NCBI GenBank assembly: GCA_021613535.1
Contig: CP075496.1
Location: 6,820,001 to 6,884,000, forward strand
Direction: 5' to 3'
Source of the DNA: Adineta vaga
Lineage: Eukaryota > Animalia > Rotifera
DNA length: 64,000 nt
This document shows positions 51,651-55,638 of this stretch, in pieces (the first letter of the stretch is position 1; each line of letters starts with the position of its first letter). Below the pieces are notes generated by a model. It saw only the letters and a program-made list of their open reading frames with translations. It did no database searches and was not told the origin of the DNA. The translations under genes were made by a program, and so were the position numbers.

Positions 51651-52499
51651 TCATTTTTTTCTCAATTGATGTTTTCTTTCGATCGTGAGAATGTTATTCC
51701 TGTCGGATAATTTTCCATAATTTTCTCTCTTTTTGTATATATGCGCCTTTTTTATTCGTGTGCAGTAGCTAGTCATTCATTCATCCAATCATCTCATGTT
51801 TTTCTTCTTTAATACTTCAACTATCATTGTGCACATTATTCAATAAGTTTGTATGAAATACACACTTATTCATAATTTTGGTGTTCCTCTTTTTCTTTTT
51901 GATGAATAATCTTAATACGCATAAAAAACAAAGAAATGTATTATTACTTGTTTGTGCAAGTACACAAATAATTCATCATTTGCAAGGAATCTTTGTCATG
52001 ATTGATTCATACGTCAGCAAAAAAGTAAATTATAAAATTTTGATTACCCATGAAGCCATAACGACGAGCAATATGATTTCAAGCTTTGCACTTGGAAAAT
52101 AGTATGTCGACCGTTTAAGTAAATACATAAATATGATTCGATAAAAAAAGAAATACTTATTGAATACGTAAAATAAAGAAACATGCGAGGCAATCGATGA
52201 CGTATTTTACCCTTTCTCCGCTTCTTGCTATGACGAATATCACCCTCTAAAAAGTCTTCTTGTTTTGGAGTCAGGAAAGAAAAAAATAGACGAGAACAAA
52301 GAAGGGAAAAACATAGAACCCTTATTTTTCCGTCCGCTATTCACAAGGATAATTTCGCAAGAAATGTATTTTTTTCTAATGACGATTCAACATATCCAAT
52401 AACAAAGGAGAAAAAAAAAGAGAAGGGTGGTGAGGGGAGAAAGAAAGTGAGAGAGAGGGAGGGAGGAAGGAAGAAAAGGAATGTGAATGCCGCGTCGAC

Positions 52500-52508
52500 T
52501 ATATAAAG
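52500..52508 (+). promoter_or_regulatory. Putative TATA box upstream of AMD1
   Basis: TATATAAAG lies ~115 nt before the ATG, downstream of a purine/G-rich tract (52420-52480). Confidence 0.4.
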
Positions 52509-52616
52509 AAAAAATAATCTTCACGTACATTTGTAGAAAGCAACCTTTTTCTTTTAATAACTTCACTCGTTTGTCGCTCAACAGCGAACTACTCGATAAA
52601 ATCGACGTATATCGCA

Positions 52617-54366
52617 ATGACTGGCCATTTCTTCGAAGGAGCTGAAAAGCTATTAGAAATCTGGTTTGTTGCTGGTGGTAACGAATCGGGTAAAGCAACA
52701 ACACATAATGATCTTCGTAATATTCCACGGTAATTTATAAATTTTATTTCATTATTACTATATACGATGATTTCTTTTTAAAAATCTTTAGAGATCTGAT
52801 TGAAGAAGTATTAGGTTTGGTTAATTGTAAAGTGCTTAAATATGCACAGTCGGCTACAACGGATACTTATGTATTAAGTGAATCAAGCATGTTTGTTTTT
52901 CAAACTCATTTTATCTTAAAAACATGTGGCGAAACGACATTACTTCATGCTGTTCAACCAATGTTGGAACTTGCACGCGATTACTGTGGATTTGATATTG
53001 TCGATGTAGGAAATGAACTAAAAAATTTCTCTTGAAAAGAATATGAATTTTGTTTTTGCTTGTTTAGCAAATCTTCTATAGTCGTCGTAAATTTCTTCGA
53101 CCTGAGTTGCAAAAAGCACCACACACAAGTTTTGAACATGAAGTAAATAGCGAGATTTCGAAAGATGTCATCAGAAATGCATATTGTCACCTTTGTACTT
53201 TAGGTCGCTTATCTTGATTCAATCTTCGAAGGTAAATATTAGCAATAATGACATCATTTTGTAATTACTCAAGTTTTCCTTGCTTGTAGGTGGTTGTGCT
53301 TACGTTCTTGGTCGTACCAATGTTGATTGCTGGTAAGTTGAACTGATCTCAGTTGTTATCTAACGAACAACTCATATCTAATTCTAATTCAGAGAATTTG
53401 AATAGGAGAAAAGCACTTTCTTTTTTTGTAAAAATTAAACTTTGTTCTATCGAGATACCAGGTTTCTATCGTCTGTAGACAAAATGTAATCTGAAGATTT
53501 CTGATAGACACTTGAATATGCGCATCTTTTTCTGTCTACAAAGGAAACATATTTTCGCATATGGAATGTTAAATATCTAGTACCTAGTTTATAACTGCCA
53601 ATAACATTCCAATCTATAACAAGAGATAAAGAGAGCATTGAGTAAGTTGAAAATCAAAACGTGAGGAAATGTGGGATACTATCCAATATAATATGTGAAG
53701 ATATTTGTAATGAATATTTTTGATTCTTTAGGTATTTATACACACTGGATAAAAACTGTGTTAGTACAAAATCAGATCAAACATTGGAAATTATCATGAC
53801 CGATTTAGATTCGGAAAAAATGAAAATTTTCTACCAGGAATATACAAGTTCAGCTGCTGAAGCAACAAAAGTATGCTATTCTTCTGAGAAAATCAATTTC
53901 CGATCGATAATTTTCTTTCTATAGAAAGCCGGCATTGATAAATTATTTCCAAATGCAAAAATTTTCGATTATTTATTTGATCCATGTGGTTATTCAATGA
54001 ATGGTCTTTTACCCGATGGCCATTATTTTACCATTCATATAACACCAGAACCGGATTTTTCATATGTTAGTTTTGAAACAAATGCTTCTTACAGTCAATA
54101 TCAAGAATTAACACGAAAAATTCTCAAAATGTTCAATCCAGGCAAATTCACAACTACAATTTTCGGTGGCACTGTAAGTTATTTTGTCTTTTTGTTTTGA
54201 AAATTAATCTTATTCATCATTTATTTCGATTTCACAGGCAGCAACAAGTCTTGATACGCAACGAAAATTGTTCTTATTTTCTGACTACGGTCGTGTTGAT
54301 CACCAAATTGTTTGCTTGGTTGATCATGATCTTATTTACAGCTATTACAAAAAGCATCCAAGCTGA
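52617..54366 (+). CDS. AMD1: S-adenosylmethionine decarboxylase proenzyme
   Basis: [13 protein letters not shown], pyruvoyl cleavage site [34 protein letters not shown] and [18 protein letters not shown]; ends YKKHPS-TGA. Confidence 0.97.
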
Positions 54367-54615
54367 GGATTCTGCAACACCGTCTGCGTGTGTCGTCTAA
54401 CATCTGTCGACATGCACGCAAGATTGAGTGTTGCATTAGCACAACTTAGCAAAAAGAAACTTATGAAAATAATTCCATCAAACATTTCTGTACAATGGGC
54501 ACCATTGATTCAAATATTTGTCAAAAGAGATCTGGTACGATTACGGTTAACATCAAAGAAACGAACGAAGAAATTGAAGTATGCATTTCATCACAATACC
54601 AGAAAGTATAGATAA
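54367..54615 (+). other. In-frame 82-codon extension after the AMD1 UGA (candidate readthrough tail)
   Basis: The frame stays open from 54367 to TAA at 54613-54615; the track ORF 54388..54615 is in the same frame as the AMD1 CDS. Confidence 0.6.
54373..54435 (+). promoter_or_regulatory. RNA stem-loop 6 nt downstream of the AMD1 stop codon (candidate readthrough element)
   Basis: Nested helices TGCAACAC/GTGTTGCA, TGCGTG/CACGCA and TGTCG/CGACA. Confidence 0.65.
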
Positions 54616-54871
54616 TATTTGCTCAATTGCTGGCCGTTGTAGATTAGTGTTACAGTTTTATTTTCATGTGTTCTTTTTGTGTTTTGATTTTTTTTAACAA
54701 CATTAATCGAAGCAACATTGAGAAGAAGAAGAAAATAAATGAATGATTATATATATTCATATAACCAAAACTAATTTATTAAATTTATTTTAATAAGACA
54801 GAATCAAAACTAAAATAAGACAAAAATCATTTATCGAATTGATACTGTTTTCTCTTCTATAAATGTTTATT

Positions 54872-55638
54872 TCAACTTTCAATTCGTTCAAAGTTTTGTG
54901 CTCGTCGTCCTGGATACGAAATGAAGAAGAAACAAATGTAAAAGAATGAAATATAATCATATCACTACTTACTATCACCAGCTATAATATCTAATCGACA
55001 GAGAATAATGCCGAATATTAAAACGAGGAGTAAACATCCACCACCGATATAGATTAACAATGATGCTGCATCAACGCCTAATATGAAAACATAGAAAACA
55101 AAATCGTAATCATAGAATTTAAAAAATGCAAAACTATTTTTTTCTATGAAAACAGACTGAAATACATTTCTTCTTATCTAGTTTTAATTAAAAAAAACAA
55201 ATAGAGTCGATTAGTAGAAATGATATTCTCAAGTAATGACATCATGGACATTGATTTTTTTAATATGAACGAAATATGATTTGTACAGAATTACAGACAA
55301 AACTCAGAAACGAGAAATCAATAAAATGAAGTTTATTAAACTACTCATCTGGTTGTGAGATTACCAAAAGAAAATAATATTTCATGAAAATTCTATTAAT
55401 TATATTCTTCATTATAAATTTTAGAAAAATATTCTTTGAATTAAACTCTAACCCGCAGAACCGATTTCCAATTGCTGTTAATTTCAATCACTTATCATAC
55501 AGAAAAGAAACGTAACTATGTCAAGAATATTGTCATCTTTATTACTAATAATTAATCTAACTTACCAAGAAGTTCGTTCGACACTTGCGGCATTTTTGTA
55601 TGTGAATATCCCATTGGAGCGAGCGGTGTACTTCTCAT
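54872..55638 (-). CDS. Small single-pass membrane protein (~71 aa), 3 exons
   Basis: Phase-compatible exons with GTAAGT donors give MRSTPLAPMGYSHTKMPQVSNELLGVDAASLLIYIGGGCLLLVLIFGIILCRLDIIAGDRRRAQNFERIES. Confidence 0.65.

Follow-up and report, generated by a model that had tools for sequence, protein, structure and literature searches.

In vertebrates, a minority of the ribosomes translating AMD1, the gene for S-adenosylmethionine decarboxylase, read through its stop codon and stall at a second stop downstream, where elements known as the FRK clamp and the Arg hook block eRF1 (PMC13025110). The body of this readthrough tail is loosely conserved; its end is tightly conserved, stands in register with a conserved stop codon, and marks the point at which conservation ceases (PMC13025110). 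AMD1 is also among the classic targets of translational control by polyamines (PMC13025110). There are few cellular genes whose own messenger RNA (mRNA) is believed to be regulated by readthrough. AMD1 is one of them, and the purpose of its tail is debated; a ribosome queue that counts rounds of translation, a degron and other roles have all been considered. The subject here is the 3' end of AMD1 in the bdelloid rotifer Adineta vaga, in a 64,000-nucleotide stretch of assembly GCA_021613535.1 (contig CP075496.1, positions 6,820,001 to 6,884,000 of the forward strand), referred to as the window, in whose own numbering coordinates are given. Comparison of lineages strongly supports a translated, hairpin-associated extension of AMD1 at this locus, and the gene probably ends in a module for programmed stop-codon readthrough.

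Two further systems bear on the locus. In alphaviruses, several plant virus genera and Drosophila kelch, an extended stem-loop 3' of the stop is known to stimulate readthrough (Firth et al. 2011, PMC3159437); the validated stimulators have stems of 12 or more base pairs (bp), separated from the stop by a spacer of 7–8 nucleotides (nt), and stimulate readthrough up to tenfold (PMC3159437). The other is the upstream open reading frame (uORF) of yeast HOL1, where a proline and a serine before the stop codon (Pro-Ser-stop) make termination dependent on eIF5A and polyamine, as the work of Vindu et al. (2021) is cited in PMC10855120 and PMC9656687. The literature thus confirms HOL1 as the precedent that the first-pass annotation of the window had named for this motif (PMC10855120). 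In the literature searched, no description of a bdelloid AMD1 tail was found, nor were there papers that joined rotifers with readthrough or Pro-Ser-stop with polyamine. AZIN1, which the annotation had named beside HOL1, carries a PPW motif, not Pro-Ser-stop.

In the window, the AMD1 coding sequence (52617–54363, on the plus strand like the other features of this gene) ends in CAT CCA AGC TGA (His-Pro-Ser-stop, 54355–54366), of which CCA AGC TGA, at 54358–54366, is the Pro-Ser-stop. The same frame then stays open for 82 codons (54367–54612; 52–83 codons in relatives) up to a second stop, TAA, at 54613–54615. The sequence bears out this terminus and open frame as first annotated. The chance of such a frame, put at that stage near 1 in 1000, is close to the values obtained from mononucleotide shuffles of the tail, which are 0.002 for the window copy and 0.0006 for the second copy in the genome, its ohnologue. 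In a single window the open frame alone would be weak evidence, a modest coincidence given the many genes scanned. The tail is more than chance because it is conserved across lineages.

The sole other AMD1 copy in the genome lies on the minus strand of contig 1 (G000:C1:6149328-6149576, locus L002). The two copies are old duplicates, with a synonymous divergence of 0.6–1.6 in their coding exons and a ratio of nonsynonymous to synonymous change (dN/dS) of about 0.1. The ohnologue ends in Leu-Pro-Ser-TGA followed by an open tail of 83 codons, with one 3-nt indel relative to the window copy; the tail stops at the same TAA inside the same TAATATTT, and similarity is lost a few bases later.

Further lineages were gathered in two ways. 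In the first, one AMD1 exon was searched against protein collections, which yielded short products, 78–95% identical, on metagenome and assembly contigs. Seven contigs were fetched in this way, by the enzyme and not by the tail, making nine lineages with the window and the ohnologue, and all nine carry IYSYYKK[H/L]PS-stop, the hairpin and an open tail. In the second, metagenome contigs were scanned with a pattern for the outer stem of the hairpin, an open frame being no criterion; this gave 15 further AMD1 3' ends, while 8 of the 23 metagenome matches were bacterial chance matches and were discarded. The total came to 28 bdelloid-like loci with 23 distinct sequences, the ohnologue included. 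Tail lengths run from 75 to 83 codons, with 52 in one divergent lineage (L007–L010, L031). In a tree of the last exon and tail, the contig-1 copy clusters with eight metagenome lineages (SH-aLRT 96), the rest being placed elsewhere. Since the module occurs in both genome copies, this tree indicates that it is older than the duplication behind them, and it has persisted in many descendant lineages of both.

Over the 23 tails there is no in-frame stop, against 146 and 130 stops in the other two plus-strand frames, and, as the first-pass annotation would lead one to expect, no orthologue shows a frameshift or an early stop after the first stop codon. The minus strand carries 146, 93 and 121 stops in its three frames, which rules out an opposite-strand gene over the tail. 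The lengths of segments between nucleotide anchors, taken with no use of translation, tell the same story. The hairpin loop measures 14 or 5 nt between anchors, a 9-nt change upstream of a conserved AUG; the distance from the hairpin to a CAATGG anchor is 45, 57, 60 or 63 nt; and that from CAATGG to the codons for K[YF]A is 63, 72, 78, 84 or 87 nt. From K[YF]A to the second stop it is 36 nt without exception. All length differences are multiples of three, in at least nine events that include a 90-nt deletion in L007. In every lineage with a long tail, the second stop itself is positionally homologous. It reads TAA TATTT in most sequences, with TAG instead in L038 and the L007 group, and nucleotide similarity falls away a few bases past it.

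Substitutions in the tail follow the same frame. In codon models (GY+F1X4, where omega denotes dN/dS and twice the log-likelihood difference, 2dlnL, is the test against omega = 1), omega is 0.15 for the last 24 codons (2dlnL 62), 0.44 for the middle of the tail (2dlnL 23) and 0.28 for everything downstream of the hairpin (2dlnL 90). When the alignment is shifted by one or two bases and stops are masked, omega lies at 0.9–2.0, and near 2 in the region of the last 24 codons, with 2dlnL of at most 6; the flatness of these controls means that the signal is frame-specific and no artefact of composition or alignment. It becomes clear only with many lineages, the single pairwise comparison of the two genome copies giving a whole-tail dN/dS of 0.8. 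A conserved in-frame reading frame with a coding pattern of substitution, such as defines an AMD1 readthrough tail, is found in all 23 sequences. By this comparison, the frame, the length register, the pairing of the hairpin and the peptide are each under selection, and the tail lies inside the mRNA.

A hairpin had been noticed after the stop on first reading, and it is well borne out. It spans 54374–54434, with a 5' arm at 54374–54395, a loop at 54396–54407 and a 3' arm at 54408–54434 that has small bulges, and its 22 bp fold with a free energy (dG) of −30.1 kcal/mol (z −2.8). In the alignments, the spacer between first stop and stem (54367–54373) is 7 nt in every sequence, and 28 nt separate the first stop from the end of the 5' arm in 23 of 23. 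RNAalifold, run unguided, gives the same stem as that drawn by eye. Standard pairs fill 99.1% of 462 pair cells (21 sequences); sliding the 3' partners lowers this to 54% or less. Five stem pairs show compensatory two-sided changes, such as G-C to A-U and U-A to A-U, and the observed covariation score was matched by 0 of 500 shuffles. The sequence of the loop is freely variable. Genome-wide, the hairpin pattern matches the two AMD1 copies only. With its 22 pairs, its constant 7-nt spacer and five compensated pairs, the element has the features by which the stem-loops of Firth et al. are recognised. Inside the hairpin omega is 0.88, as expected if selection there acts on RNA.

This last observation raises the question of whether anything is translated past the first stop. 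Were the hairpin and the distal conserved block no more than RNA elements of an untranslated region (UTR), the open frame would be incidental. The hairpin is clearly selected as RNA, by its omega and its covariation, and 3' UTRs can carry conserved binding sites for proteins or microRNAs. Against such a reading stand the stop counts by frame (0 versus 130–146), the restriction of indels to multiples of three, purifying selection specific to the tail frame and the end of conservation at the second stop. On these comparisons it appears close to refuted, and is held to be exceedingly improbable.

A different route to translation would be termination at the AMD1 stop followed by reinitiation, the tail then being a separate downstream open reading frame (ORF). 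Most lineages have an in-frame AUG (..D-M-H..) in the 3' arm of the hairpin, at tail codon 16, and a structure beside the stop could hold the ribosome. However, the L007–L010/L031 lineage has leucine at that codon and has kept the tail, the loop, upstream of the AUG, differs in length by 9 nt with no loss of the frame set by the AMD1 stop, and codons 1–15 are free of stops in all sequences despite variation in the loop. Reinitiation after an ORF of about 330 codons is also very inefficient in eukaryotes. Reinitiation is thus very unlikely here. It is on the absence of stops and the in-frame loop indel that translation of codons 1–15 rests, because of the omega found inside the hairpin.

A UGA followed by a stable hairpin might also suggest that the codon specifies selenocysteine, with the hairpin contributing to the insertion signal. 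An Rfam scan of 54200–54800 found no family near threshold, the selenocysteine insertion sequence (SECIS) included, and Pro-Ser-stop is the normal C-terminus of AMD1 in other phyla. Selenocysteine recoding is refuted outright by the identity of the first stop, which is TGA in 17 of the distinct sequences and TAA in six. These six form one group in the tree (L003, L019, L021, L025, L033, L037). The group keeps in-frame indels, and in its tails the proportion of synonymous differences exceeds that of nonsynonymous differences in 14 of 15 pairs, the exception being a nearly identical pair. A TAA first stop followed by a constrained tail in six sequences means that the module is not specific to UGA. 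Of the Pro-Ser-UGA, hairpin and tail that the first-pass annotation had proposed, the tail and hairpin therefore stand, in 23 distinct sequences, in both gene copies and inside the mRNA, whereas the UGA does not, since six sequences use TAA.

RNA contigs assembled from four public runs of four studies place the tail within the transcript. The last AMD1 exon continues without splicing from 54238 to at least 54699 in run X8 and 54739 in run X6; the mRNA thus runs past 54615, short of which a poly(A) site would have told against the proposal. Neither a splice joint, nor an indel, nor a variant letter occurs at the AMD1 stop (54364–54366) in the contigs of the four runs. Alternative splicing around the stop is rejected, there being no joint, and so is RNA editing of the stop, there being no variant. 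Runs X2 and X8 differ from the window (G>C, G>A and A>T at 54290, 54319 and 54537), which reflects another strain or allele; 54537 is the sole difference inside the tail and is synonymous (GTA to GTT). From these comparisons, readthrough would be by far the most economical route to translation of the tail.

The most conserved part of the tail is a basic C-terminal block formed by the last 24 codons (...LRLTSKKRxKKLKYAFHHNxRKYR, 54541–54612), the region of lowest omega and a candidate arrest peptide or C-degron. With residues numbered backwards from the second stop, 23 of 23 sequences have K-12, H-7, K-3 and R-1 without variation; position -11 is aromatic or histidine (Y/F/H), -4 is arginine or lysine in 20 of 23, and -14/-15 are lysine wherever a lineage has them. 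The short-tail lineage, in which 30 codons have been deleted, has kept the terminal pattern (...RKFFHFHPVKKPR-stop), and conforms to K[YF]...H..[RK]K.R-stop. The tail as a whole is strongly basic, with an isoelectric point (pI) of 10.6–11.1. Among proteins of 45–143 amino acids, a search with the tail sequence brought up no homologue, and against the sequences of solved structures there was only a chance fibronectin match (E 1.7).

What such a peptide might do can be judged in part from where conservation falls. The extended protein could be a functional isoform, its basic C-terminus (KKRxKK) targeting AMD1, for instance, to the nucleus or nucleolus, or binding nucleic acid. The cluster of lysine and arginine does resemble a monopartite nuclear localisation signal, and other genes are known to produce functional isoforms by readthrough. 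Yet constraint in the middle of the tail is weak (omega 0.44), the lineage that lost 30 codons lost the KKR cluster with them and kept the terminal pattern, and a localisation signal would not be expected to keep so strictly in register with the stop. An isoform of this kind is unlikely.

A C-terminal degron is a serious alternative by analogy with known motifs, although it is given only about a one-in-several standing beside the arrest described below. In this case the extended AMD1, ending in [R/K]-K-x-R, would be recognised as an Arg/C-degron and destroyed, and readthrough would waste a fraction of synthesis. The invariant R-1 and K-3 and the basic residue at -4 are as this would require, the Arg/C-degron of FEM1C is LKELR (PMC10026218), the pI of the tail is suitably high, and such behaviour has been discussed for the vertebrate tail too. 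A degron needs, however, neither residues conserved back to -12 to -24 nor conserved bases after the second stop, and it leaves unexplained the selection on length in a weakly conserved spacer.

In the readthrough model that these data favour, most ribosomes would terminate at Pro-Ser-stop, while a fraction would decode the first stop as sense, aided by the 22-bp hairpin 7 nt downstream. Ribosomes that read through would add 52–83 codons. The middle of this tail would serve mainly as an open, length-constrained spacer, and the last 12–24 or so residues would form the conserved basic and aromatic peptide in register with the second stop. For this peptide, the most likely mode of action is in cis, on the ribosome that makes it or on the product that carries it. 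The first choice would be arrest of the nascent peptide at the second stop, as for the vertebrate tail, which would limit output per mRNA; a C-terminal degron would be the second.

Several points weigh against this model. Readthrough itself is inferred from comparison of sequences. The base after the first stop is a purine (TGA-G/A, TAA-G), which is no classic leaky context, and so the hairpin has to do the work; one clade, moreover, has TAA, a stop that is generally the tightest. Over the hairpin, the tail is without constraint at the level of the peptide. The codon alignment was steered by the protein alignment, and the metagenome contigs were assigned to taxa by inference. Arrest is argued by analogy only, because the tail is unlike the vertebrate tail and the residue positions differ, and the queueing model of the vertebrate tail has been partly revised by its own authors (PMC8831848).

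Pro-Ser precedes the first stop in 28 of 28 loci, the proline codon being CCA, CCG or CCT, which are synonymous, and the serine codon always AGC. The motif had been taken to be placed here for the module. This does not hold, as 67 of 183 full-length AMD1 homologues end in Pro-Ser, insects and chelicerates included. Insect proteins end in ...KFPS or ...RFPS, chelicerate proteins in ...FAKAPS and bdelloid proteins in ...KHPS; mollusc AMD1 ends in ...RPVI or ...RPII, with a proline likewise near the end. By this comparison, a Pro-Ser-stop ending of AMD1 is widespread in protostomes and ancestral to the arthropod and rotifer proteins, and it predates the bdelloid tail. No comment on this ending across arthropods and rotifers was found in the literature searched.

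The motif may still be a sensor of termination rate, by analogy with the HOL1 uORF. The first-pass annotation had gone as far as a full model, in which the Pro-Ser-stop is sensitive to eIF5A and polyamine, and high polyamine slows termination and raises readthrough; this would add to the explanation preferred above, not replace it. Invariance of the two residues in all 28 loci through synonymous change of the proline codon is in keeping with such a role, as are the dependence on eIF5A and polyamine of HOL1 uORF termination (PMC10855120, PMC9656687) and the standing of AMD1 as a polyamine-controlled translation target (PMC13025110). The leader is relevant too. It is 84 nt long (52533–52616; the contig of run X6 begins at 52533 after adapter-like loose letters) and has no AUG, hence no MAGDIS-type uORF, and AMD1 here is without the polyamine-sensing upstream ORF known from vertebrates and plants. 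Because the uORF is absent, a sensor role for Pro-Ser-stop becomes attractive. In the sensor class, however, a uORF gates the main ORF, and here the motif ends the main ORF itself. Its presence in the 67 homologues, among them the AMD1 of a chelicerate that has no long tail (L042), means that it may serve the enzyme or some role independent of the tail, and a slow Pro-Ser-stop might mean stalling rather than readthrough. The full model is accordingly regarded as possible, somewhat less doubtful than the degron.

The chelicerates offer a lead of their own. The closest non-bdelloid contig is a chelicerate one (L015:671-829; best named match the mite Oppia nitens, 74%), in which ...FAKAPS-TGA is followed by 51 open codons ending ...LLWGRIS-TGA. 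In Limulus polyphemus (KI901853.1, L045:19285-19410) there are 40 open codons ending ...LLWERVS-TGA, and in a transcript of another chelicerate (L039:1216-1359) 46 open codons ending ...FVWSRIS-TGA; a fourth chelicerate (L042:1158-1217) has merely 18. All four 3' ends share ...FAKAPS-TGA. Individually these open frames are unremarkable (chance 0.01–0.09). The ending [LV]WxR[IV]S-stop common to the three longer tails, and a shared CyGTCTGGAC about 15 nt after the first stop, suggest a second, different AMD1 tail, though four species are too few to claim one.

The remainder of the locus can be described briefly. The identity of the gene was established exon by exon in protein searches, in which relatives from many animals bear the name AMD1; a full-length search begun from a protein of the bivalve Mya arenaria listed none from a rotifer. 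The exon at 53925–54173 scores 111 bits against Pfam SAM_decarbox (PF01536; E 7e-32) and that at 53733–53870 scores 28.9 bits (E 8e-07), the curated cut-off being 22.2. Pfam and the RNA contigs together define eight exons: 52617 (ATG)–52728, 52791–53005, 53068–53142, 53204–53229, 53288–53331/2, 53731/2–53870, 53925–54173 and 54238–54363. All seven introns are GT..AG in the contigs. Over the 399-nt intron 53332–53731, runs X1 and X2 have separate contigs of low depth (7–10, against 350–450 on exons), which shows that some intron RNA is retained or unspliced. A TATA-like box, CTATATAAAG, lies at 52499–52508, about 25–35 nt upstream of the RNA 5' end at 52533.

Beyond the second stop, the remaining 3' UTR occupies 54616–54739, with AATAAA at 54734–54739; the contigs reach 54699 (X8) and 54739 (X6). 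A 21-nt element, AAyAACATTnATnnAAGCAAC, stands at 54696–54716, about 20–35 nt upstream of the poly(A) signal, and its strict pattern is found in 5 of the 23 sequences (both genome copies, one of them L002, together with L004, L005 and L037). Outside this element the distal 3' UTR allows no alignment among lineages. A convergent minus-strand gene lies at 54790–55100, with an intron at 54909–54971 (CT..AC on the plus strand). Contigs of runs X1 and X2 are continuous between this gene and the AMD1 3' UTR, so the 3' ends of the two transcripts abut or overlap.

Taken with the vertebrate case, these observations permit a wider, tentative reading, no more probable than the degron. AMD1 readthrough tails would be either recurrent or very old in animals. 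They would take in vertebrates (127 codons, FRK clamp and Arg hook), bdelloids (hairpin, 52–83 codons, K[YF]xxxHxx[RK]KxR-stop) and probably chelicerates (40–51 open codons, [LV]WxR[IV]S-TGA, in Limulus and two others), with the protostome Pro-Ser-stop as a polyamine/eIF5A step and the tail as feedback. If this is true, Pro-Ser-stop would set the number of ribosomes entering the tail, and the tail would be a negative feedback on polyamine synthesis that replaces the missing uORF. Bdelloid AMD1 offers a compact, clearly delimited system for asking whether a Pro-Ser-stop at the end of a main ORF responds to polyamine, whether a hairpin sets the rate of readthrough and whether unrelated peptides can arrest ribosomes at termination.

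Of the systems outlined at the beginning, the stem-loops described by Firth et al. (2011, PMC3159437) are closest to the bdelloid hairpin at the level of RNA. In both, a long stem begins 7–8 nt after the stop, carries compensatory substitutions and lies inside the coding region that is read through. The bdelloid host is, by contrast, a cellular metabolic gene of a rotifer, and its stop is followed by a purine, unlike the UGA-C contexts of that class. With the HOL1 uORF sensor of yeast, bdelloid AMD1 shares the same two residues before the stop, and in both the mRNA is one of polyamine metabolism. In HOL1 the outcome is blocked scanning, whereas readthrough is proposed here, and at a motif that ends the main ORF, with no uORF. 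The CRL2-FEM1 Arg/C-degrons, such as SIL1 ...LKELR (PMC10026218), resemble the end of the tail in their C-terminal arginine and the basic residue at -4, and differ from it in that bdelloid conservation reaches much further upstream.

The vertebrate AMD1 tail belongs to the same gene, and it too has a less conserved body and a basic, aromatic stretch of some 20–25 last residues fixed to a conserved second stop. The bdelloid tail is shorter, at 52–83 codons as against 127. Searches of proteins and solved structures, in which the human sequence itself was not aligned, detected no similarity between the two, and the published spacing of the FRK clamp (K117, R121, F124) and the Arg125 hook is unmatched by bdelloid K-12, H-7, K-3 and R-1. 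A conserved hairpin is present in bdelloids, and the papers examined mention none for the tail of vertebrates; the first stop can be UAA in bdelloids, unlike in vertebrate AMD1; and the vertebrate gene has the MAGDIS uORF that the bdelloid leader lacks. Stalling has been described for the vertebrate tail and is a prediction for the bdelloid one. Because the sequences are unalignable and the conserved positions differ, the likeness is one of functional analogy and not of a shared peptide family. That AMD1 of a distant phylum carries a second version, built on an unrelated peptide and with a clear RNA stimulator, argues for an adaptive role in this gene of the arrangement as such, in which a leaky stop is followed by a spacer and by a conserved C-terminal peptide at a second stop.

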